A program made the position numbers and the translations under genes. Below, in pieces: positions 45,714-64,000 of a DNA stretch of 64,000 bases (the first letter of the stretch is position 1; every line of letters starts with the position of its first letter). Under the pieces are notes generated by a model. The model saw nothing but the letters and a program-made list of their open reading frames with translations, ran no database searches and was not told the origin of the DNA. Where the stretch lies: positions 196,659-260,658 of IMG/VR virus record IMGVR_UViG_3300034012_003212. One strand, written 5' to 3'.

Positions 45714-45721
45714 TATATATC
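45714..45721 (-). promoter_or_regulatory. GATATATA putative late promoter
   Basis: Exact octamer 25 bp upstream of ATG 45688. Confidence 0.6.
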
Positions 45722-53344: not shown

Positions 53345-54535
53345 TTAAAAAAGTCTCTTTGTTGTTATCAAATTCCCAGGAACCGGGGGAAACCCAAGAA
53401 CCTCGAGAACTCTGTTCATGGGAGCTATGATGGTTTTTTCAAACTGTATGTCGAAATTCATTTTAGGCGCAAATTCGTATGGGTATGAACTCGTATGGTA
53501 CGCAAATACAACATCCTCTTCTTGGCAGTGGTAGTATTTCACCTTGTTCCCTGATTTTATCATCTCGTACTTCGATTTACATTTTTTGTTACTATTGAGG
53601 AGGTAGTTATAGTAACCCGCTGCTCTTAGGTGTATCGGACATTGTTTTCTAACGGAAAAATCCCCAGAAGATGGTATATCATTCGCTATGTACTTGTCGT
53701 AATCATTTATGGTTTTCGTCATCGATATTCTTTCTATCGGTTGAACCATAAATTCAGACTTCGCATCTTTTAACATTCTAACAAATTCGGAATACTTTAG
53801 ATCCTTCTTTTGTTTGAATATGTGTTTCATGAATGTCACCATCTTCTCTCTGACGAACACAGGAGTAGAACCCTGTATCATCTCAACGCCCTTGGGTTTT
53901 ATTTTAGAAAGACTCTCTATGTTTATACCAGGGTCTTTCCACACAGGATTTAGGATGTATTTCTTCTTTGCTATGAATATCGCAGACTCGGATATCATCT
54001 CCATTTCAAAATTCTGAAGATTCTTCGTGCCGAACTTCTTCGCGTACTGATCAAAACAGTTGTCAAGGAAATCCTTCAACCGTAGTTCATAGAGTGAAAG
54101 TATGAATTTCTTGGGATCATCTTTCCAATCACAGCTCTTAAGAACCTGGTCGAAGCTCACATAAGCACTATCCGTATCGTTGTATATCGTGCACTCGCTC
54201 ACAATCTGGTGCACATTTGATGTTATGCCGAGAGCCTCATGGAGCTGAGTGTCATTATGCCAATGCTTGTTGAAGTATATGTTTATGTACCTATCAGCAT
54301 TCTTTATTATGTCCTGCCCCTGGAGTGTTATCGATTCCGCTATATCAGTGCTATACATAATAAAATAGACACTTCCATATGCACCATAGATGGAATTGAT
54401 GAGGAGTTTTATGGATTGTTCCTGATTCGTCCTTTGCATTTTTATTGCCTCCAGACGATTTATCTCCTCTTGTATTTCTCCGGAGCTCTTACCCCGCCAT
54501 TGGTCGAGGTCAAAATTTATGGAATCAATCTTCAT
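53345..54535 (-). CDS. Family B DNA polymerase, C-terminal half only (gp43B-like)
   Basis: Motif B KLLINSIYG, motif C YNDTDS, KKKY, KGVE; no exonuclease domain or motif A; ATG 54535 with GGAG SD. Confidence 0.9.
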   Translation of the reverse strand: MKIDSINFDLDQWRGKSSGEIQEEINRLEAIKMQRTNQEQSIKLLINSIYGAYGSVYFIMYSTDIAESITLQGQDIIKNADRYINIYFNKHWHNDTQLHEALGITSNVHQIVSECTIYNDTDSAYVSFDQVLKSCDWKDDPKKFILSLYELRLKDFLDNCFDQYAKKFGTKNLQNFEMEMISESAIFIAKKKYILNPVWKDPGINIESLSKIKPKGVEMIQGSTPVFVREKMVTFMKHIFKQKKDLKYSEFVRMLKDAKSEFMVQPIERISMTKTINDYDKYIANDIPSSGDFSVRKQCPIHLRAAGYYNYLLNSNKKCKSKYEMIKSGNKVKYYHCQEEDVVFAYHTSSYPYEFAPKMNFDIQFEKTIIAPMNRVLEVLGFPPVPGNLITTKRLF

Positions 54536-55298
54536 TCTCGGCAGCTCCAATTATGGACGTCGTTTCGCTTCCATCTTGGATCAATGTTGCCACTATCTTA
54601 TCTTCGTAGATTCCCAGGCTGATGTCACTTGAATCACCTATGTACTGTAAACAATTCTTCTTTATTCTTACGTTGTTGCTTAGTTTGCCTTTTACTTCTG
54701 CTTCTAGGCGGTATTCATACATCGGAGTGAATACAACAACATTTTCTAGATCACCGTCAAATTTCAGGCTTATGGTCTCTTCGCTGTCCGCATCAAACAA
54801 TGAATAAATTTTCGACAACACTGATTTTGATATGTTTATGCTTGCTCCGTTAACGGCAGACTTTATAACCCGCTCGTATATTTCATCAGACATGCTTGTC
54901 ACATAGTCCAGCTCTGTGCACTTGTTCGAAAGCGTGAGTGATGTTGTCACAAATTTTACGTCCCTGCATACGTAAAAATTATTGGTCTCTTCGCACAGGA
55001 ACTGCACCTCAATCTCGCCTTCTCCGAGTATGTCTATGTTCTTGATAACTCGTTGAATGCTGAAGAAAGGAACTTTGATTATCTTGCCATCCCTGTCATC
55101 TTCCATTGTGCAGAAACCATCAAATTCCATCTTGCTGCGTTTGATGAAACCTCTATCGGGCGTGTGTGTTTTTGAAACAATGCATTCCTCGTGGACTTCA
55201 AGAAGAAGAGATGTGTTAACTTTTTTGAATCTGTCCAGGAATTCTTTCAGCATGCCGATCTTGTCTGTGTACATGCTAAACTTTTTGAGTTTTGCCAT
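54525..55298 (-). CDS. Sliding clamp, T4 gp45-like
   Basis: 257 aa adjacent to polymerase; pattern LKEFLDRFKKVNTSLLLEV typical of clamp N-termini. Confidence 0.65.
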   Translation of the reverse strand: MAKLKKFSMYTDKIGMLKEFLDRFKKVNTSLLLEVHEECIVSKTHTPDRGFIKRSKMEFDGFCTMEDDRDGKIIKVPFFSIQRVIKNIDILGEGEIEVQFLCEETNNFYVCRDVKFVTTSLTLSNKCTELDYVTSMSDEIYERVIKSAVNGASINISKSVLSKIYSLFDADSEETISLKFDGDLENVVVFTPMYEYRLEAEVKGKLSNNVRIKKNCLQYIGDSSDISLGIYEDKIVATLIQDGSETTSIIGAAENED

Positions 55299-55327
55299 AT
55301 TAGCTCCTAATATATTTTGGTTTAGAG

Positions 55328-56686
55328 TTATACATAAGATTCTTCTTCTTGTTCATCGTCATTTGCAAATATTTCTATGCCGTTCTCTTCTGAAACTTCA
55401 AACAATTGTTCAGCGGGTTTTATCTTCTTTCCCCTTAACTCGAAGGTCATACTGTTCACAGTTTTTTGCTGAGCTTTGAGGTCCCTTCTGATCTCATCGA
55501 GTAGTATTCTCTGGGATTTGATCGCATCCTCGGTCTTCTTTATTTCATCTGTGCTGAGCACCCTCATTTTAAGGGAATCAAGGCGATCATGTGTTCTTTT
55601 TTCATGTACCTTTAAGTGTTCCTCGATCTCAGACTGTGTTCTCTTTTTAAACATTAAAAACTTCATGTACTCGAGTTTTGCACACAGGAATTTCAGTTCT
55701 TCTGATTCTTCTTGAAGATTCCACGTCAGATTATCGAGCATGACCTTTTGATTATACTCGCTGAAATCAAGGAGGTAGTCCTCGACCCTCTCGTATTCTA
55801 CTATGCCTCGGTCCTTTACAAAAATTATGGACTCGTGTACTATCATCTTGGTTGATTTCACTACTGCGTCACAGACACGGTTCCACGAATCATTGGTCTC
55901 CGACTTTGATATGCTTATAGTTACATCCACATCGCTTGCGCTATTATTCTGAAAATCAAACGATGTTTCAGTGAGAACAGAGTTCAATTTTTTAAGGAAA
56001 GCATCAAACCTCATCATCGGCGGTATAGAGGTCACGTGTATCTTTCTCTTTTTGTCATCAACATCGACGACGCCTTCGATTATCCAGGTTCTATCATCTC
56101 CGTGCTTCTTTACCTTTCCATTAAATCCGTTGAAACTAGGTGGCACACTCTTTCTCTTTCCGTGCATGAAATCTGTTATATCTTCGAGCTTCCTTGGAAG
56201 TATCGTTGTCTTATAACCGACTGCAATTCCCATTGCGCCGGAGCACAGGCCGAATGGAGTGTCAACAATGAGATTGTCGAACACGCCGTCCTCGTTCTTT
56301 TTATTGAGGTGATAGTACCTGTTAGTTATTTCCCTCATCTTTGGATTTATCTTTACCGAAGTATACCTTGCGCTCGCTGCGTTATGGGAAACAGGACAGC
56401 CAAAGAATCCGTCACCTACCATAACGGGTTCCGCGCAGTTAAACGGCCTGGCTAACTTGTTTATCGTGGAAACTAAACTAGCATCTCCTGAGTGATATCC
56501 GGATGCTATTGCATTTCCTACGACTGTCAGCGTTTTCGTGAAAGACGACGGACAATTATCTATGAGGATCCTCTGACCATTTGTGAGAGAATCATACCAG
56601 TTTGGTATTCCTCGTGATTCTATGACGTACAATGCATAGGATCTGTATCCTACGTCTATCTGCCTTTTGATTGTTAGATCAGCCAT
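55328..56686 (-). CDS. gp52: DNA topoisomerase II subunit A (T4 gp52/GyrA-like)
   Basis: RGIPNWYDSLTNGQR, YHSGD, catalytic NAASARYT, GIAVGY. Confidence 0.93.
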   Translation of the reverse strand: MADLTIKRQIDVGYRSYALYVIESRGIPNWYDSLTNGQRILIDNCPSSFTKTLTVVGNAIASGYHSGDASLVSTINKLARPFNCAEPVMVGDGFFGCPVSHNAASARYTSVKINPKMREITNRYYHLNKKNEDGVFDNLIVDTPFGLCSGAMGIAVGYKTTILPRKLEDITDFMHGKRKSVPPSFNGFNGKVKKHGDDRTWIIEGVVDVDDKKRKIHVTSIPPMMRFDAFLKKLNSVLTETSFDFQNNSASDVDVTISISKSETNDSWNRVCDAVVKSTKMIVHESIIFVKDRGIVEYERVEDYLLDFSEYNQKVMLDNLTWNLQEESEELKFLCAKLEYMKFLMFKKRTQSEIEEHLKVHEKRTHDRLDSLKMRVLSTDEIKKTEDAIKSQRILLDEIRRDLKAQQKTVNSMTFELRGKKIKPAEQLFEVSEENGIEIFANDDEQEEESYV

Positions 56687-56697
56687 GGTATATGTGA

Positions 56698-57228
56698 TTA
56701 CTTATTTACGGAAGGTTGTGTTTGAAGCCAATCTTTTCTCCTCTGTGCAGAAGGCCCGAATGCTATGTCCAGGAAACGCAAAGATTGTGAGTCTTCTCTG
56801 AACTTTTTCAGTTCCATGTTATTGAATATCCATTCCCAGTCTTTTGTGTCGTTGCTCCCAAGACCTTTTAGATACCTAACATTCTTAGGTTTTTTTGATG
56901 CCGAAGACGAGTACTTCTTGAATTCCTCTATGCTGTAGAAATATTTGCGATCCTTTCTTCCTTCTATTTCACAAGACATGAGCGGTTTCACGAGGGTGGA
57001 AAGCTTACCTTCTTTTATGATGTAGGGAAACCAGCGATAAAAGAGATTCACTAGCAGTGATGTTATGTGCTCCCCATCACAATTTTTTGCAAGAATTCTC
57101 ACTCCGTCACAATCTATTATAAATGTATGATTTTCATCAACTGTAATGTCATACAGTTCCTGTTCTCCTTCTGTTATCTCGATTGAATCGACTCGAACCA
57201 GTGTGTATTTAGATAAATCTATATCCAT
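56698..57228 (-). CDS. Split-intein C-fragment (49 aa) fused to topoisomerase II B C-extein (TOPRIM C-terminal part, gp60-like)
   Basis: LYDITVDENHTFII (block F) and AKN/C (block G), then CDGEHITSLLVNLF and YLKGLGS. Confidence 0.92.
   Translation of the reverse strand: MDIDLSKYTLVRVDSIEITEGEQELYDITVDENHTFIIDCDGVRILAKNCDGEHITSLLVNLFYRWFPYIIKEGKLSTLVKPLMSCEIEGRKDRKYFYSIEEFKKYSSSASKKPKNVRYLKGLGSNDTKDWEWIFNNMELKKFREDSQSLRFLDIAFGPSAQRRKDWLQTQPSVNK
57082..57228 (-). mobile_element. Int-C half of split intein
   Basis: Own ATG; ends Asn followed by +1 Cys at 57079-57081. Confidence 0.9.
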
Positions 57229-57232
57229 GTTA

Positions 57233-58345
57233 TTAGATGATTAGTGTTGTTTTATTTTTCTTGAGGAATTCTATGTGTTTATTTAATTCATCTACTGTTA
57301 GATTATACGAAGATGATTCCCATATTATGAGAACTGAACAATTCAATACGGATAAAATTTGATTTATCCTTTCTTTGTCCTTATTCCAAATTTCAAACAC
57401 ACTCTTTTTTATGCTCTTGTGTATGAAAAATTCATCTTTAAAAGACTTTGGGTTTGCATGCCAGTAATCCCCGTAAAATTCTATAGCTATATTGAAATCT
57501 CTAAGATAATAGTCTAATTTCGTTACCTTTGTAACATACTTTCCTTTTTGATTTATTTTTATTTGAACTGGAAATTCTGAATCAACTGATAGATGTAACT
57601 CATGTAATTTATTCAGAACATTTTCGTCAGATATCTTTGATTTTGTAGTTCCCAGCGATCTCTTCTTTAATTTATCAATATACTCTTTCCATTTATTTTC
57701 ACCTTCTATTTCCCCATATTTTTGTAAATAAAAATTCTTTGTCCCAGCTTTCGATATCTTTTCACAGCGTTCATTATATTTCGCAGTTCCTACTTCTATT
57801 CCATATCTAGCGATATAATCATTTAAATTAGTTTTAGATGGCTTATTTTTTCTATTCTCAATCTTCTTATTTAAAACAGAAATAATCTGATCTTCTGTTA
57901 AATCCTTGTTTTTTCTTTTTACTGTAACATAGTTAATTCCCTTTAATTTAACAGATTCTTCCATGCTAATTTTATATTTGTATGAAAGATATTCTACCCT
58001 AGATCCTATATGTTCATAAATTTTTGGATTATATGGTTCATTCAAAATCTTTAAAGTGGCTTTATTTTTGCATTCTATCGTATTACATATGAATCCGTTG
58101 GAATAATTTACCTCAAATGTTTTATTTAAATGATCCACAATAAACGTTTCTTCTGCTAATTTTTCTCCGCATGAACATAGACTTCTTTCGTGTGTATCGC
58201 TAGTAACATCCGTGTAATATTTTTTTACGTAGTCGTGTAAAAGAATACCGTGTACTCTTTTTACATGGGAACCAACGTAACTATTGTTGGCTGTTAGGAT
58301 TTTATCGCATAACATACATTGGCATTTTTCTTTTTCATTTGTCAT
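57233..58345 (-). CDS. Free-standing homing endonuclease, Vsr/DUF559-like PD-(D/E)xK with N-terminal zinc finger
   Basis: CQCMLC..H..H; C-terminal DYYLRDFNIAIEFYGDYWH and VLIIWE; AT-rich; sits between intein halves. Confidence 0.85.
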   Translation of the reverse strand: MTNEKEKCQCMLCDKILTANNSYVGSHVKRVHGILLHDYVKKYYTDVTSDTHERSLCSCGEKLAEETFIVDHLNKTFEVNYSNGFICNTIECKNKATLKILNEPYNPKIYEHIGSRVEYLSYKYKISMEESVKLKGINYVTVKRKNKDLTEDQIISVLNKKIENRKNKPSKTNLNDYIARYGIEVGTAKYNERCEKISKAGTKNFYLQKYGEIEGENKWKEYIDKLKKRSLGTTKSKISDENVLNKLHELHLSVDSEFPVQIKINQKGKYVTKVTKLDYYLRDFNIAIEFYGDYWHANPKSFKDEFFIHKSIKKSVFEIWNKDKERINQILSVLNCSVLIIWESSSYNLTVDELNKHIEFLKKNKTTLII

Positions 58346-58378
58346 CCGTCGTAGTTTTTTTTCTATATACTACGACGG
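58346..58378 (-). promoter_or_regulatory. 10-bp inverted repeat abutting the endonuclease ATG, with a TATATA motif at the 5' arm/loop boundary
   Basis: Minus strand CCGTCGTAGT-ATATAGAAAAAAA-ACTACGACGG-ATG. Confidence 0.7.
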
Positions 58379-58387
58379 AATTCAGAT

Positions 58388-58663
58388 TTATTTAGAAATC
58401 ATGAAAAAATCGGTTTCTAACAAATCTTTTGCTTTGACTTCAATTACAACCCCATCCCTAACCACTAGCCATTTATGATTTTCTGAGCATGTGACTGTTT
58501 TTCCATAAATCCTTATTTTCACTAATTTATCTTCAATGCGTGATACTGTGTTAACGACTCTATTGAATGTTCCATCATGTGTGAGGACCATTTCCCCTAA
58601 TTGTATATCAGAGATTGACTTTAAACCATTTTGTGTAACTATTTTAGTATCGCCTGATAAACA
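58388..58663 (-). mobile_element. Int-N half of split intein (91 aa)
   Basis: CLSGDTKI (block A), VTCSENHKW (block B TxxH-like), then stop. Confidence 0.9.
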
Positions 58664-60100
58664 ATCCGAATCTGTCGCTATTATTAAGTCCTTGAAATCA
58701 CAAGTCTTATCCTCGAAATCAAGACCTAATATATTTATGAGATCCATCACTTCTTTGTTCGATGTCAGATCTGATATGGACTGCACATTCTTTACTTTAC
58801 CCCGGAGCGCATACACTGCATCGCCGTCTTTATCCCTGCGCTGTGCAAGGGATCCCGCTGCAGATAAACCTTCACATATGAATATCCTATTCTTTTTCTT
58901 CCCTGGAGGAAAGTACTTCTCGCTAAATTTTATGGAGTTGTCTCTTTTTGCGGATCGTATCTTCTTGAGTTCCCCTTTGTGTTGATACTCATCTATCGCT
59001 TTACGTATTGATGCCTCAACATCGCTTCCCTTGAACTCTCGTTTTAACTTATTTATGAGGGGCTCAACGAACGCCAAGAGCTCATTTCTTACTGTAACAA
59101 ACCTCGTCTTATTTTGATCACCGAAGCGCATCAACGCAGGAGGCACATTCAATGTTATCACTGTTTCATAGAATTGATGTGCCATGTCATAGCCTAGGAT
59201 TTCATTCAACGCTTCCGTCACAACAGTTTCGTGTACTTGCCTCTGGCCGGTGCTCGATGCCTGTGTTCCATTTATGAACGATGTACGTATACCACCCTGG
59301 AATTTTTTATACACGCACACAGCCCCTATTTTCGTCGTGACGGTTATACGATCTTCTGGGAAGAAATCAACTGGGAGTTGTAAAGGTTTTTCATCCCACT
59401 CGACGATAAATTCAACATTTTTCAGAATAGGATCAAAACTAAGTATCCATTTCCTGAACGCCATCTGTGTTGTGATGTAGTTTTTATCCCATTTGCACCC
59501 TGAAAACGTGCTCTTCCTTGGGATAAACGTTATCTTTGTTCCAGTTGTTCCTGACTTATTAGGTGTTATTCGGTGCCCTGTGCTTTTGAAGTTATTCCAT
59601 GTTTGGCAATACATCTGTTTTCCGTCGCAGGTTTCCACACTGAACTCATCCGATAGCATGTTGGTCAGAGATATTCCCATTCCATTTGTACCAACAATGT
59701 TCTCGTCTATCGAATCATTGTTGAAATTACTTCCTGCTCTTAACATGCAGAGCGCAGTCTCCACCATCGTCATCTTTGATTTTGGGTGAATCTTTGCTGC
59801 ATTTTTGAAACCGCCTCCGGAGTCCGAGACTGAAACAGAGTTATTTTTTGAGTTAAAGTGCACCCTGATGGTTATTCCTTTCCCCCCTTGGCGCTTGGCT
59901 TCATCGAATGCGTTGTCTATAGCCTCGTTCAGTATCTTATACATTCCAACAGAAATGGTCTTCTGTTCCTCATATATAAGATCATCCCTCAGTATTGGTA
60001 TTCTTTCCTCCGATGGCTGAACAGAACCAACGTATATCGTTGGTTTTCTCAGAACGTGTTCAAAATCGGAAAGTACCTCAATGTCTTTGTTTGCTGCCAT
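58388..60100 (-). CDS. Topoisomerase II subunit B N-extein (GHKL ATPase + TOPRIM; gp39/GyrB-like) fused to Int-N
   Basis: EAIDNAFDE, DSGGGF, GTNGMGISLTN, CEGLSA, ALRGK, ATDSD then CLSG. Confidence 0.93.
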   Translation of the reverse strand: MAANKDIEVLSDFEHVLRKPTIYVGSVQPSEERIPILRDDLIYEEQKTISVGMYKILNEAIDNAFDEAKRQGGKGITIRVHFNSKNNSVSVSDSGGGFKNAAKIHPKSKMTMVETALCMLRAGSNFNNDSIDENIVGTNGMGISLTNMLSDEFSVETCDGKQMYCQTWNNFKSTGHRITPNKSGTTGTKITFIPRKSTFSGCKWDKNYITTQMAFRKWILSFDPILKNVEFIVEWDEKPLQLPVDFFPEDRITVTTKIGAVCVYKKFQGGIRTSFINGTQASSTGQRQVHETVVTEALNEILGYDMAHQFYETVITLNVPPALMRFGDQNKTRFVTVRNELLAFVEPLINKLKREFKGSDVEASIRKAIDEYQHKGELKKIRSAKRDNSIKFSEKYFPPGKKKNRIFICEGLSAAGSLAQRRDKDGDAVYALRGKVKNVQSISDLTSNKEVMDLINILGLDFEDKTCDFKDLIIATDSDCLSGDTKIVTQNGLKSISDIQLGEMVLTHDGTFNRVVNTVSRIEDKLVKIRIYGKTVTCSENHKWLVVRDGVVIEVKAKDLLETDFFMISK

Positions 60101-60358
60101 CTATCACAATAGATAATGTGTAACACGTCAAATATATACAGGAAACCATCGAATGTTATCAATAGTTGAATTTTAAACGCATAGTATGCGAAATCATCGA
60201 ATGGTTTCTTGGATTCAGGTGCGTTTAATTTCAATCAGATTGAACCACGCCCCATCTGGATGCATGTATTCGGATGCATCTAGCCGCCATCTGGCGAAAA
60301 GATGCAAATTTATGAATGCATCTTGAATCAGAAAAACTTAAAAAAACAAAATTCGTTA

Positions 60359-63300
60359 ATGCCAACGTCAAATATTTGGGTAAATGGTACACAAGTTTAC
60401 CCAATGGGTAACCAGGACATAGGAAATTTAGGCATGCAGGGCATGCAAGGTTTACAGGGTAGCCCTGGAGGAGGTGGAGGATTCCAAGGTCTACAGGGAT
60501 TGCAGGGAATACGTGGATTCCAGGGTAGACAGGGTTCATCTGGATCCGGTTTCCAGGGATTCCAGGGGGCTTCTGCGAGCGGTTTACAGGGAAACCAAGG
60601 AATCCAAGGTCCCGCAGGAGGCGGTGGCGGCGGCTATCAGGGCCTTCAGGGTTTACAAGGCAATCAGGGAAATCAAGGTCCTATTGGCAATACCGGATCC
60701 GGTACTCAAGGCATCCAGGGTTTACAGGGAATTCAAGGTTTGCAAGGAAATCAGGGGAACCAAGGATTTCAGGGAATACAAGGTGCCACAGGCGCAGGGT
60801 CACAAGGCATTCAAGGTCTACAGGGCTTACAGGGAAATCAAGGAAATCAAGGCAGCCAAGGCGCTACAGGGGCGGGAACCCAAGGTATTCAGGGATTACA
60901 AGGAAATCAGGGTAACCAAGGTCCTGCTGGTGGAAGTGGAAACGGAACACAAGGATTCCAAGGTCTTCAAGGTCTTCAGGGATTACAGGGATTGCAGGGA
61001 AATCAAGGTAGCCAGGGTAACCAAGGTGCTACAGGAGCTGGAACCCAGGGTATCCAAGGTCTTCAGGGATTGCAAGGTCTCCAAGGTCTTCAGGGATTGC
61101 AGGGATTGCAGGGTCTTCAGGGAACTCAAGGTGCTATTGGTGCTACAGGTATAGGAACTCAAGGTCTTCAAGGATTACAAGGAGTTCAAGGCCTCCAAGG
61201 TCTTCAAGGATTGCAAGGCAATCAAGGTAACCAGGGTAATCAGGGTGCTACAGGTGCTGGTGTTCAAGGTCTTCAGGGACTGCAAGGAAATCAAGGTAAC
61301 CAAGGTCCTGCTGGTGGAAGTGGAAACGGAACACAAGGATTCCAAGGTCTTCAAGGTCTTCAGGGATTACAGGGTCTTCAGGGCATTCAAGGTGACCAAG
61401 GTAACCAAGGTAATCAGGGTGCTACAGGTGCTGGTGTTCAAGGTCTTCAGGGCTTTCAAGGTAACCAAGGTGTTGCAGGTTCATCTGGAACCCAAGGTCT
61501 TCAAGGATTGCAGGGTCTTCAGGGTCTTCAGGGTCTTCAAGGATTGCAGGGTCTGCAAGGTAACCAAGGTAACCAAGGTGTTGCAGGTTCATCTGGAACC
61601 CAGGGTCTTCAGGGATTGCAAGGTCTTCAGGGCATTCAAGGTAACCAAGGTAACCAAGGTGTTGCAGGTTCATCTGGAACCCAAGGTCTTCAGGGATTGC
61701 AAGGTCTTCAAGGATTACAAGGTCTTCAAGGTCTTCAAGGATTGCAGGGTCTGCAAGGTAACCAAGGTAACCAAGGTAACCAAGGTAACCAAGGTAACCA
61801 AGGTGTTGCAGGTTCATCTGGAACCCAGGGTCTTCAGGGATTGCAAGGTCTTCAGGGCATTCAAGGTAACCAAGGTAACCAAGGTGTTGCAGGTTCATCT
61901 GGAACCCAGGGTCTTCAGGGTCTTCAGGGTCTTCAGGGTAACCAAGGTGTCGCCGGTTCATCTGGAACCCAAGGTCTTCAGGGATTGCAAGGTCTTCAAG
62001 GATTACAAGGTCTTCAAGGATTGCAAGGAAATCAAGGAAACCAGGGACCTATAGGAACAGGAACTCAAGGTCTTCAAGGTCTTCAAGGATTGCAAGGAAA
62101 TCAAGGAAACCAGGGACCTATAGGAACAGGAACTCAAGGTCTTCAAGGTCTTCAAGGATTGCAAGGAAATCAAGGAAACCAGGGATTTCAGGGTATGCAA
62201 GGTCCTGGTGGTTCTGGTATATTCCCAAGTAATTATATTGTTCAAGGTAAATTAAATGCGGATCAAACAATATCAAGTGGTAGTGATGCTATAATTCAAT
62301 TTGTAGATGATTTTGATCCACAGAACTGGTATGATGCATCAACATATAAATTTACTCCAACAATTGAAGGTTATTATATAATAGATGCAGGGGTGTGGTT
62401 TGCAGATCCAGGTTCAACTAATGCTCAAATGAATCTGCAAGGAAGGAAGAACGCTAATACATTTGCAATAGCACAAGAACCCAATAATAGTTCAGGTACT
62501 GGTCAAAGTCTTGGATTTACAAAGATAATTTACTTAAATGGAACAACAGATTACATTGATTTCACAGTTTATCAAAGTACAGGAGTCAACAGAAATATCC
62601 AACAAGGTTCAAATGGATCTGGAACATGGTTTTCTGCTGCATTAATACCGGCAGGGGGAACACAGGGAAATCAGGGAAACCAAGGTCTTCAGGGATTGCA
62701 GGGAACTCAAGGAACTCAGGGGGTTCAGGGAACTCAAGGTCTTCAAGGTCTTCAAGGTCTTCAAGGACTTCAGGGATTGCAGGGAACTCAAGGTCTTCAA
62801 GGTCTTCAGGGATTGCAGGGAACTCAGGGGGTTCAGGGAACTCAGGGTCTTCAGGGTCTTCAAGGTCTTCAAGGTCTTCAGGGATTGCAGGGAACTCAAG
62901 GAACTCAGGGGGTTCAGGGAACTCAGGGGGTTCAGGGAACTCAAGGAACCCAAGGTCTTCAGGGTCTTCAGGGTCTTCAGGGTCTTCAGGGTCTTCAAGG
63001 TCTTCAGGGATTGCAGGGAACTCAGGGGGTTCAGGGAACTCAAGGAACCCAAGGTCTTCAGGGTCTTCAGGGTCTTCAGGGTCTTCAAGGTCTTCAGGGA
63101 TTGCAGGGAACTCAGGGGGTTCAGGGAACTCAGGGGGTTCAGGGAACTCAGGGTCTTCAGGGTCTTCAGGGTCTTCAGGGATTGCAGGGAACTCAGGGGG
63201 TTCAGGGAACTCAGGGGGTTCAGGGAACTCAGGGTCTTCAGGGTCTTCAGGGTCTTCAAGGTCTTCAGGGATTGCAGGGAACTCAGGGGGTTCAGGGAAC

Positions 63301-64000
63301 TCAAGGAACCCAAGGTCTTCAGGGTCTTCAGGGTCTTCAAGGTCTTCAGGGATTGCAGGGAACTCAAGGAACTCAAGGAACTCAAGGAACTCAAGGAACC
63401 CAAGGTCTTCAGGGTCTTCAGGGTCTTCAGGGTCTCCAAGGTCTTCAGGGTCTTCAGGGATTGCAGGGAACTCAGGGGGTTCAGGGAACTCAGGGGGTTC
63501 AGGGAACTCAGGGTCTTCAGGGTCTTCAAGGTCTTCAGGGATTGCAGGGAACTCAGGGGGTTCAGGGAACCCAAGGTCTTCAGGGTCTTCAAGGTCTTCA
63601 GGGATTGCAGGGAACTCAAGGAACTCAAGGAACTCAAGGAACTCAGGGTCTTCAGGGTCTTCAGGGTCTTCAGGGTCTTCAAGGTCTTCAGGGATTGCAG
63701 GGAACTCAAGGAACTCAAGGAACTCAAGGAACTCAAGGAACCCAAGGTCTTCAGGGTCTTCAAGGTCTTCAGGGATTGCAGGGAACTCAAGGAACTCAAG
63801 GAACTCAAGGAACTCAAGGAACTCAGGGTCTTCAGGGTCTTCAGGGTCTTCAGGGTCTTCAAGGTCTTCAGGGATTGCAGGGAACTCAAGGAACTCAAGG
63901 AACCCAAGGTCTTCAGGGTCTTCAGGGTCTTCAGGGTCTTCAAGGTCTTCAGGGATTGCAGGGAACTCAAGGAACTCAAGGAACTCAAGGTCTTCAGGGA
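60359..64000 (+). CDS. Very long collagen-like (Gly-X-Gln)n protein with internal C1q-like domain; probable fibre; runs off window
   Basis: Manual translation from ATG 60359 ([17 protein letters not shown]...GMQGLQG); frame stays open through the globular insert and GLQ/GTQ/GNQ/GVQ triplets to the edge. Confidence 0.88.
62215..62655 (+). other. C1q/TNF-like globular domain embedded in the collagen ORF
   Basis: [25 protein letters not shown] and [17 protein letters not shown] match the gC1q pattern (FTxPxxGxYxF; LxxGDxVxV). Confidence 0.7.
62660..64000 (+). repeat. Near-pure 9-bp-unit tandem repeat (GGTCTTCAG/GGAACTCAA/GGATTGCAG/GGGGTTCAG)
   Basis: Read directly from sequence; encodes GLQ/GTQ/GVQ. 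Confidence 0.95.

Follow-up and report, generated by a model that had tools for sequence, protein, structure and literature searches.

The gene for the large subunit of a type II topoisomerase is broken into separate open reading frames in the window, that is, in the whole 64,000-nucleotide stretch analysed (positions 196,659 to 260,658 of IMG/VR record IMGVR_UViG_3300034012_003212, a metagenome-assembled virus contig of 260 kb). This raises the question of what divided the gene and how one subunit could be obtained from the pieces. An earlier note on this DNA had proposed a split intein with a free-standing endonuclease gene between its halves. The locus is very probably a fractured gene of the type described by Dassa et al. 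2009 (PMC2677866), i.e. a 1,582-bp selfish element lodged in the TOPRIM DxDxD motif of the topoisomerase II large subunit (Topo2L) of a T4-like freshwater jumbo phage, in which a class-1 split intein related to gp41-1 flanks a Vsr-like endonuclease, with trans-splicing of the gene product and homing of the element. This reading rests on the anatomy of the locus and its colinearity with intact genes, on conserved motifs and purifying selection, on the Vsr-like fold and a predicted interface between Int-N and Int-C, and on presence/absence polymorphism in nature.

Architecture of the interrupted gene

All the reading frames and intein halves delimited in the earlier note were found in place, on the minus strand. 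ORF1 (58388-60100, 570 aa) begins with the N-extein (58664-60100), which comprises residues 1-479 of a T4 gp39/GyrB-like large subunit, contains the GHKL ATPase together with the initial portion of TOPRIM (Pfam HATPase_c and Toprim) and ends in ...IIATDSD; it is followed by the 91-aa Int-N (CLSGDTK...CSENHKW...FFMISK; 58391-58663) and a stop codon (58388-58390). A 42-nt spacer, in which an RNA hairpin is located (58345-58379), separates it from ORF2 (57233-58345), the free-standing homing endonuclease gene of 370 aa. The start codon of Int-C lies 4 nt past the double stop of ORF2 and opens ORF3 (56698-57228, 176 aa), which consists of the 49-aa Int-C (MDIDLSKY...YDITVDENHTF...ILAKN; 57082-57228), recognised by a block F/G match to PF14890, and a C-extein of 127 aa plus stop (56698-57081), which opens with the +1 Cys (CDGEHITSLL...) and supplies the rest of TOPRIM and TOPRIM_C (Pfam TOPRIM_C). 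Outside the mobile element, the minus-strand gene at 55328-56686 encodes the T4 gp52/GyrA-like medium subunit (Pfam DNA_topoisoIV, 2e-36; PHROG 551), the partner of the spliced large subunit; the gene order with this subunit is the same in the relatives L004 and L005.

The mobile insert as a whole, from Int-N through the spacer and the endonuclease gene to Int-C, occupies 57082-58663. Its GC content is 0.286 in the endonuclease gene, 0.33 in Int-N and 0.327 in Int-C, compared with 0.41-0.42 in the exteins and 0.416 in the genome, which marks the insert as foreign. The endonuclease is single-copy in the 260-kb genome, in which a search with PF14890 and a custom Int-N profile gave no inteins beyond this locus. 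When the locus was compared by megablast with 50,697 phage records, no match was obtained, and protein identity to known phages tops out at about 27%.

Excision of exactly these 1,582 bp yields a 606-aa gene (479 + 127), whose product is 85% identical to the intact homologue P0110, gap-free and of the same length. The extein-only coding sequence of 1,821 nt can be aligned gap-free to the intact 1,821-nt gene of the syntenic relative L005, and removal of the intein restores a protein colinear with both of these intein-less homologues. Since the match to the PHROG 543 profile (topoisomerase II large subunit) ends at position 518 in ORF1 (positions 24-518) and resumes at 518 in ORF3 (positions 518-639), the exteins abut exactly. 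The interruption of the DxDxD motif, also claimed earlier, was confirmed: excision restores the motif as DSD-C-DG, the junction reading IIATDSD-C-DGEHITSLL in the window and IIATDSD-F-DGLHITSLL in L005. At +1, 102 intein-less homologues have P, V, K, F, S or A and never C, and all intein-bearing alleles for which the C-extein was read have C.

As the record is a metagenome assembly, unrelated sequence might have been placed in the topoisomerase gene by a chimeric contig. This is extraordinarily improbable, for the boundaries of the insert coincide exactly with the intein ends, the stretch including the endonuclease gene is present at 100% identity, in the pieces compared, in the independent lake run X2, and homologous arrangements occur in contigs of JGI, ENA and Logan. 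With the abutting profile matches and the gap-free extein alignment, these recurrences also show that the resemblance to a split gene is not due to chance.

Intein halves and endonuclease

Together with the colinearity of the exteins, the presence of blocks A, B, F and G bears out the split intein. In block A, Cys1 (CLSGDTK) directly follows Asp479 and is invariant in 12 aligned alleles. Block B reads SENH; its His does not vary among the 12 Int-N sequences, and the position usually taken by Thr (TxxH) is occupied by Ser in the window and by Ser, Thr or Gly across the 12. The terminal Asn and the following Cys (...YDITVDENHTF...ILAKN-C) form a junction found in 11 of 11 related ORF3-like clusters, all of which end xxN-CDG, and in three contiguous inteins. 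Alleles whose exteins share just 27-83% identity have kept block F and the terminal Asn as well as Cys1 and the block B His. The closest solved relative of Int-N is the gp41-1 intein (6RIZ/6QAZ), which it matches with E 1e-8; its matches to Pfam Hint and Intein_splicing are under the curated cut-offs, as expected of separated halves. Int-N and Int-C are predicted to associate: their complex scored 0.69 (best of three controls 0.00), a level attained by 51 of 78 solved complexes but also by 2 of 108 mismatched pairs, and this pass may reflect memory of solved inteins.

In comparison with the closest allele, L002, synonymous sites are saturated (pS 0.75-0.93), which prevents dN/dS proper, and pN and pS are given instead. 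The values are 0.17 and 0.81 for Int-N and 0.18 and 0.84 for Int-C, and pN is equally low in the endonuclease and the exteins (0.12-0.25 across all parts). Judged by these substitutions, both intein halves are under purifying selection. The locus might instead be a decaying, non-functional remnant in a large-subunit pseudogene, host gyrase or another enzyme compensating for the loss; homing elements do decay, and one allele of this same phage has lost its endonuclease gene. Such decay is highly unlikely in view of three intact ORFs, a pN far below pS in every part, exteins and endonuclease included, an intact adjacent gp52-like subunit, and an arrangement that is maintained in many diverged phages.

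The intein halves could also have lost the ability to splice and act as a non-covalent clamp holding the topoisomerase fragments. Split enzymes are assembled in this manner in T4 (gp39/gp60) and in phage Aeh1 (NrdA), by terminal extensions that stem from a mobile element. Phage topoisomerase II tolerates a split near this point, as seen from T4 gp39/gp60 and from the HNH or GIY-YIG genes situated there, and the penultimate His of block G is replaced by Lys (AKN) in the window and L002, being kept (HN) in all other alleles. Not all active inteins have this residue, and the DnaE split inteins also do without it. Here, moreover, the break falls inside the DxDxD triad, which in T4 is intact within gp60, and a 140-aa intein would stay lodged in the active site. 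All catalytic splicing residues are kept in distant alleles, and a clamp alone gives no reason to keep them. Since the break lies within the metal-binding triad and the +1 Cys is confined to intein-bearing alleles and one empty allele that looks derived, function without splicing is unlikely, and trans-splicing is the preferred reading.

The second claim, that of a Vsr-like endonuclease, was substantiated by its predicted fold. The protein has 108 homologues, some of them named Vsr by JGI. It contains an N-terminal C2H2-like zinc finger (C10, C13, H27, H32), a second Cys/His cluster, helical repeats and a C-terminal Vsr-like/EDxHD nuclease domain at about residues 221-370. Its kinship with Vsr required a fold search, because sequence searches against PDB and Pfam gave no match. 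In the AlphaFold2 model (pLDDT 91), the top match of residues 221-370 was Vsr (1CW0_A, Z 13.9), with I-Bth0305I (3R3P) at Z 9.1; Foldseek assigned a probability of 1.00 to 1VSR, 1CW0 and 3R3P. Across 76 sequences D278, E289 and H296 are invariant, and E257 and D323 near-invariant (at least 90% conserved). The spacings D278-H296 and H296-D323 are 18 and 27, compared with 18 and 28 between the Vsr residues D51, H69 and D97 (PMC2677866). On the strength of the model, the domain is a Vsr-like nuclease fold with EDxHD residues. The N-terminal 165 residues are common only to endonucleases in Topo2L, other family members matching residues 167-344 only.

Allele states, expression and the proposed homing cycle

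The earlier note had suggested that a topoisomerase II host may be an uncommon insertion site. The site is indeed undescribed in the literature searched, but the element is common in metagenomes and not rare in nature, since over 15 distinct alleles, split or contiguous, were found there. Neighbourhoods were inspected for 10 full-length relatives of the endonuclease, and each of these lies in a Topo2L gene arranged in the same way. Other phages have contiguous mini-inteins at this site, and a second site was seen at the EGxSA motif (P0242/P0243). On the extein tree at least seven presence/absence changes are needed, a figure that is indicative only, the tree being from FastTree with long branches.

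Near-identical DNA of this one phage, in the metagenomes of different lakes, was found in three states, namely with the full element, with the split intein from which the endonuclease gene is deleted, and with no element. The second state was found in run X5, where the depth of the contig is similar to that of its flanks, so that the gene can evidently stay split once the endonuclease is gone; the L088 allele likewise has split halves with no endonuclease between them. Contigs of run X4 have a hole over the endonuclease gene. The third state is represented by a contig of run X3 that skips exactly the 1,582 bp, with 0 and 1 mismatches in the flanks, and retains the +1 Cys codon (TDSD-C-DGEH). 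This empty allele looks derived from intein-bearing alleles. It is tempting to speculate, with the chances about evenly balanced, that it is a natural, base-precise excision of the whole split-intein/endonuclease cassette, i.e. the loss step of the homing cycle caught alongside endonuclease decay, because a Cys at +1 was seen in none of the 102 intein-less homologues. This step is rarely observed. If the excision is real, the contiguous mini-inteins would complete a single system in which one could follow directly how split inteins arise and what becomes of them. Because empty, contiguous, split-with-endonuclease and split-without-endonuclease states coexist in nature, both split-intein evolution and the homing cycle can be tested directly.

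The hairpin ahead of the endonuclease gene has an 11-bp stem and carries TATATAG in its loop (58363-58369). It has a dG of -18.2 kcal/mol and a z of -5.7, matched by 0 of 200 shuffles, and its 3' arm reaches up to and includes the A of the endonuclease start codon. Equivalent hairpins with other stem sequences and ATATATA-type loops are present in L002, L004 and L007, so that structure and not sequence is conserved. In this genome, TATATA(G/A) is enriched ahead of genes, the portal gene included; the loop sequence differs from T4's TATAAATA. A scan for sigma-70 promoters and terminators gave fewer matches than shuffled sequence and was uninformative.

From these features we infer the splicing chemistry, the activity and target of the endonuclease, and regulation by the hairpin and its promoter-like loop as follows. 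ORF1 and ORF3 would be translated apart and their intein halves would come together; trans-splicing via Cys1, the block B His, the terminal Asn49 and the +1 Cys would join Asp479 to Cys, giving a 606-aa subunit (...TDSD-C-DGEH...) that would act with the gp52-like subunit encoded next door. The hairpin, which covers the ribosome-binding region and the start codon, probably silences the endonuclease on read-through transcripts, and the enzyme is probably expressed from the promoter-like TATATAG in the loop. ORF3 has no obvious Shine-Dalgarno sequence, and in relatives the endonuclease gene and ORF3 overlap. If translation of ORF3 were coupled to that of the endonuclease ORF, early silencing by the hairpin would be hard to reconcile with an early need for topoisomerase. 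In a mixed infection, the endonuclease would cleave the conserved TOPRIM coding sequence of intein-less alleles, which would then acquire the whole element as the break is repaired.

Comparison with known systems

The resemblance to known fractured genes asserted in the earlier note holds for the layout, as in gp41-1 and the set of Dassa et al. 2009 (PMC2677866): N-extein/Int-N, endonuclease ORF and Int-C/C-extein on one strand of a T4-like aquatic phage, with a hairpin in the 5'-UTR of the endonuclease and a late-promoter-like loop, whose promoter role and timing are putative here. The hosts in that set are gp41, IMPDH, DnaE, NrdA, NrdJ, ligase and terminase, and topoisomerase is absent; the present host is none of these seven enzyme types, and its insertion lies within the TOPRIM DxDxD triad. 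The layout is thus known, and the host gene and insertion site are new as far as the literature searched goes, and they bring into the class a type IIA topoisomerase, interrupted in its catalytic metal-binding triad.

Int-N has detectable homology to gp41-1 (about 40% identity over 63 residues, by eye). The halves of gp41-1, of about 88 and 37 aa, are similar in size to the 91 and 49 aa found here, the longer Int-C having additional residues between blocks F and G. Unlike gp41-1, this intein ends AKN and has a +1 Cys with acidic -1 and +2 residues. More than 10 diverged natural split pairs related to gp41-1, together with contiguous versions, are all adapted to such acidic junctions (D/CD), and these split inteins are candidates for orthogonal protein-ligation tools. 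Of the split inteins known, gp41-1 is the fastest.

The endonuclease shares with I-Bth0305I and the EDxHD family (Taylor et al. 2011, PMC3239194; 3R3P) a C-terminal Vsr-like domain with Glu, Asp, His and Asp and an N-terminal non-catalytic region, presumably DNA-binding, and that family occurs in intron-borne and intein-associated phage elements. Its identity to 3R3P is 23%, over 96 aligned residues only, and in fold and His-to-Asp spacing it is closer to E. coli Vsr.

The one earlier mention of such an element in Topo2L found in the literature searched is a passing remark in a 2022 preprint (10.1101/2022.08.31.505936), in which ORF1 of a metagenomic gene, MGS5, is split by a Hint-flanked VSR endonuclease. 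Because ORF1 of MGS5 is split besides a MobA-type split and bypass carried by the same gene, its site is presumably N-terminal of the DxDxD motif, and it may correspond to the EGxSA site.

The cyanobacterial DnaE split inteins (Npu, Ssp) are likewise naturally split, class-1 and with Cys at +1, and their sequence similarity to this intein is marginal. They lack the penultimate His, as is the case here. No endonuclease separates their halves, as in the X5 and L088 alleles; the DnaE halves lie at distant loci in cellular genomes.

In T4 gene 39/mobA/gene 60, a homing-endonuclease cassette splits the same gene at almost the same spot. The 50-nt bypass of T4 follows directly after TDADHDG, 3 codons 3' of the insertion point of this intein (TDSD^C), and the break between gp39 and gp60 is about 10 codons to the 5' side of the motif, a place where many T4-like phages have HNH or GIY-YIG endonuclease genes. 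The two systems differ in their means. T4 uses HNH MobA and non-intein terminal extensions, has no Hint motifs, assembles its subunit non-covalently and depends on ribosomal bypassing; the gene studied here has a Vsr-like endonuclease and intein halves, and it has no coding gap, the extein alignment being gap-free. Degenerate intein halves were also sought in the gp39 C-terminal and gp60 N-terminal extensions, which scored 5.3 and 3.4 bits against a 12-sequence Int-N profile, values that are not significant, and an intein origin of these extensions was dropped as unsupported. The same few Topo2L codons are hit by at least three unrelated selfish strategies, namely HNH with ribosomal bypass, GIY-YIG, and a Vsr-like endonuclease with a split intein.

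Anatomy and setting of the fractured gene

The virus record, of 260,658 bp and with an estimated completeness of 88%, ends with the window as its final 64 kb, and its phage gene content includes a T4-type portal, an UvsX/RecA-like protein, a DnaB-like helicase and a piece of a family B DNA polymerase. Three consecutive ORFs were found on the minus strand at 56698-60100, exactly where the earlier note had placed them. ORF1 (570 aa) contains the GHKL ATPase and Toprim regions of the topoisomerase II large subunit (Topo2L) up to ...IIATDSD (residue 479), followed by a 91-aa tail beginning CLSGDTK and a stop. ORF2 (370 aa) has no Pfam match. ORF3 (176 aa) starts with 49 residues ending in ILAKN, which are joined to CDGEHITSLL... 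and a TOPRIM_C domain, and is followed by the gene of a gp52/GyrA-like medium subunit (55328-56686). On the PHROG topoisomerase II large subunit profile ORF1 covers positions 24-518 and ORF3 518-639, therefore the two host parts abut and nothing is missing. The GC content is 0.41-0.42 in the exteins and 0.416 in the genome, but falls to 0.33 in each intein half and to 0.286 in ORF2.

Some neighbouring features deserve separate mention. The family B DNA polymerase is represented only by a 401-aa C-terminal piece with a YNDTDS motif, preceded by an unrelated 257-aa ORF without family match (the pair 53345-54550 and 54525-55298, both minus strand); the intein-less contig L005 is arranged in this way too (258 aa + 393 aa), and the N-terminal half of the window's polymerase must be encoded elsewhere. 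A collagen-like ORF at 60302-64000 (plus strand, more than 1,233 aa) runs past the record end and consists of G-x-Q triplets (GLQGLQGNQ..., GTQGVQ...) with a non-repeat domain of about 170 aa mid-way. At 731-28283 (genome 197368-225010) lies a tandem array of paralogous small ORFs of 120-215 aa each, 52 in number, nine on the minus strand and then 43 on the plus strand, with outliers at genome 26224-27153, 136735-137430 and 180144-181093. They form one blastp cluster (pairwise identity 21-85%), take up about 28.6 kb of the 260-kb genome and resemble leucine-rich repeats with units of about 23 aa (L.L..C.GLTKLPDGLKV.G) and common N- and C-terminal motifs; no Pfam match was obtained for the three members sampled.

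Insertion site, intein and endonuclease

The protein search with ORF1 yielded intact relatives of 604-608 aa, the nearest being P0110 (606 aa, 85% identical) from contig L005, which shares its gene order with the window. The 479 and 127 extein residues of the window add up to exactly the 606 of P0110, and the extein-only coding sequence and the L005 gene, both 1,821 nt, align with zero gaps, the nucleotide identity peaking (85%) in three 60-nt windows around the junction. Comparison of the junction, IIATDSD-C-DGEHITSLL, with those of P0110 (IIATDSD-F-DGLHITSLL) and a second intein-less homologue, P0111 (IIATDSD-V-DGEHITSLL), showed the insert to lie between the second Asp of the TOPRIM DxDxD motif and the residue next to it. 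Among 102 intein-less homologues the +1 position holds P, V, K, F, S or A but in no case C, and it is Cys in every intein-bearing allele with a readable C-extein.

The class-1 intein residues are present, namely Cys1, the block B His (SENH), block F (YDITVDENHTF) and the terminal Asn, and are conserved among alleles whose exteins are just 27-83% identical. The sole departure is the penultimate residue, which is Lys in the window and in the closest split allele, L002, and His in the other alleles. Between these two loci synonymous sites are saturated (pS 0.75-0.93), whereas non-synonymous differences are low (Int-N 0.17, Int-C 0.18, endonuclease 0.25, exteins 0.12-0.17), which indicates purifying selection on all parts. 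The nearest solved intein by sequence was the gp41-1 split intein (E 1e-8 for Int-N). Complex prediction for ORF1 residues 470-570 with ORF3 residues 1-60 gave a score of 0.69, a mark that 51 of the 78 solved complexes attained, as did 2 of the 108 mismatched pairs, the best of three controls scoring 0.00; since inteins are abundant among solved structures, this value shows likeness and not binding. The gap-free exteins and the class-1 motifs thus bear out the proposal of a split intein breaking DxDxD.

Detectable homologues of ORF2 numbered 108, several with the JGI label Vsr. In a 76-sequence alignment D278, E289, G292, H296, N298, P299 and W342 were invariant and E257, D293, W295, D323 and E343 at least 90% conserved. 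The spacings D278-H296 (18) and H296-D323 (27) match those of Vsr (D51-H69, 18; H69-D97, 28), and E289 is the counterpart of the extra invariant Glu in the Vsr-like homing family. In the AlphaFold2 model (mean pLDDT 91) residues 221-370 had E. coli Vsr as the top match among 48,161 chains (Z 13.9), the I-Bth0305I catalytic domain giving Z 9.1. The fold and the residue spacings agree with the Vsr-like endonuclease announced previously, and the enzyme is a member of the EDxHD/Vsr-like family, whose typical representative is I-Bth0305I (PMC3239194).

The N-terminus opens with a beta-beta-alpha C2H2-like zinc finger (C10, C13, H27, H32) and continues with another Cys/His cluster and with helical repeats; no structural match was found for this part. 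Of the ORF2 relatives in IMG/VR, just five loci, those with a full-length endonuclease match, are fractured Topo2L genes. Dozens of other IMG/VR relatives match residues ~167-344 only, none with Topo2L flanks, and about 20 of them are preceded by Int-N-like sequence. All ten full-length relatives with an inspected neighbourhood stand in the Topo2L arrangement. From this confinement we infer that the N-terminal region is a module recognising the Topo2L target. With this N-terminal module of its own, ORF2 stands as a new branch of the family.

The spacer of 42 nt that separates ORF1 from ORF2 contains an 11-bp hairpin (dG -18.2 kcal/mol, z -5.7), the 3' arm of which reaches the A of the endonuclease start codon. 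A hairpin occupies the equivalent place in L002, L004 and L007 with different stem sequences and an ATATATA-type loop motif in all. Of 256 crude gene calls, 16 have TATATAG in the 60 nt ahead of them (about 1.2 expected), and ATATATA was found in the same upstream interval 31 times in the whole genome (2.2 expected). TATATAG also precedes the portal gene and one large portal-region gene; examples of TATATA(G/A) are at 58363-58369, at 45719 (minus strand) and, ahead of the portal gene, at ~40990. The T4 late promoter TATAAATA is rare in this genome (12 copies), and TATATA(G/A) is probably its counterpart in this phage. Homing endonucleases of T4 and fractured genes have a translation-occluding hairpin with a late promoter in the loop (Dassa et al. 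2009, PMC2677866), and the spacer hairpin with its loop motif resembles this design; the hairpin would occlude translation of the endonuclease, with a putative late promoter in the loop. ORF3 starts 4 nt past the endonuclease stop without an evident Shine-Dalgarno sequence, and the two genes overlap in relatives, so that ORF3 translation may be coupled to that of the endonuclease.

Alleles in lake populations and in other phages

At least 20 metagenome runs from lakes or fresh water, and one labelled as a crustacean metagenome, contain near-identical DNA; they stem from 14 studies. Contigs of four runs were aligned to 55300-60200. Run X2 has the endonuclease-containing stretch, with zero mismatches in the aligned pieces. 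In run X3 a single assembled contig of 818 nt joins 57080 to 58663 (the 593-nt flank matches in full and the 225-nt flank has 1 mismatch), skipping exactly the 1,582-bp element (57082-58663) of Int-N, spacer, endonuclease gene and Int-C. The 3-nt ambiguity of the joint is the TGT codon found at both ends; the empty allele thus codes for DFKDLIIATDSD-C-DGEHITSLL, just what splicing is predicted to yield. As Cys is otherwise absent from intein-less homologues, the Cys codon kept here suggests that the element was lost precisely and that the site was not empty from the start, though the Cys may also be ancestral.

In run X5 a single assembled contig connects 57259 with 58384 through 31 other bases. 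The hairpin and nearly all of the endonuclease gene are gone and Int-N and Int-C are kept, together with the final endonuclease codons KNKTTLII and the stop, a conserved C-terminus of the family, which by sequence identifies this allele as an endonuclease deletion derivative.

The split intein with endonuclease occurs at the same site in many diverged phages (L002, L004, L007-L011, L090-L092). Split alleles seen by one half only comprise 11 ORF3-like clusters and eight more ORF1-like proteins (seven distinct at 90% identity); for three of the latter the contig also encodes a full-length endonuclease relative. P0128, P0145 and P0150 contain contiguous mini-inteins (about 120-130 aa), and contig L088 has a split intein without endonuclease. 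Its junction (L088:4500-4850, P0124 and the next ORF) reads ...IAIAAD/C ... THN/CDPDGIGH and, against intein-less TDADPDG, looks like an insertion that has moved two residues towards the N-terminus, to a point behind the first Asp, or like a local indel. The same contig has its NAD-dependent DNA ligase in two ORFs (L088:1013-2883; 362 + 228 aa, 95-nt gap), compared to one 630-aa ORF in the related L089:1649-3541; no intein motifs were seen by eye at the ligase break.

A quick extein tree placed the intein-less P0110 as sister to the window and required at least seven presence/absence changes. The intein halves and endonuclease of L010 and L007 are 34-47% similar to those of the window and the exteins 27-30%, which points to lateral spread of the element. 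In L002 the element is more diverged from the window's than the host gene is, pointing to long vertical co-residence of the two.

Relation to known fractured genes and homing elements

The finding is real and the interpretation in the earlier note is supported, the functions being predictions. The three ORFs are arranged as in the fractured genes described by Dassa et al. (2009, PMC2677866), and the earlier note's reading with a Vsr-like endonuclease holds. Their hosts are gp41, IMPDH, DnaE, NrdA, NrdJ, ligase and terminase, topoisomerase not being among them. Gyrase inteins are known from bacteria and archaea, and no published description of this phage Topo2L site was found. The architecture is as in known fractured genes; the host gene and the site are new. 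The expectation of an uncommon insertion site is correct as regards the literature searched, but not in nature, where split and contiguous alleles occur in many diverged phages. What is added is the wide range of natural alleles, the occurrence of both contiguous and split forms at one site and a three-state polymorphism within one phage population.

A preprint on T4 gene 60 bypass mentions one metagenomic Topo2L in which a VSR endonuclease with Hint domains on either side splits ORF1 (10.1101/2022.08.31.505936). As that Topo2L also has the MobA-type split, its VSR/Hint site must lie upstream of the window's, and it may be a second site, at the EGxSA motif. Such a second split-intein site was observed in P0242 and P0243 (235 aa each, P0243 on a 292,905-bp contig), where an Int-C ending ISHN is joined to SAMGSILQKRDP and so located at the TOPRIM EGxSA glutamate motif, with Ser at +1; both TOPRIM metal-site motifs thus host inteins.

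In T4 itself gp39 homology stops about 10 codons before the DxDxD motif, and the 50-nt bypass directly follows TDADHDG, three codons 3' of the insertion point of the window's intein. Many T4-like phages have a gene for an HNH or GIY-YIG endonuclease next, at this same place. With the bypass, these genes and the present element in one place, this short conserved stretch of Topo2L is a hot spot for unrelated homing elements.
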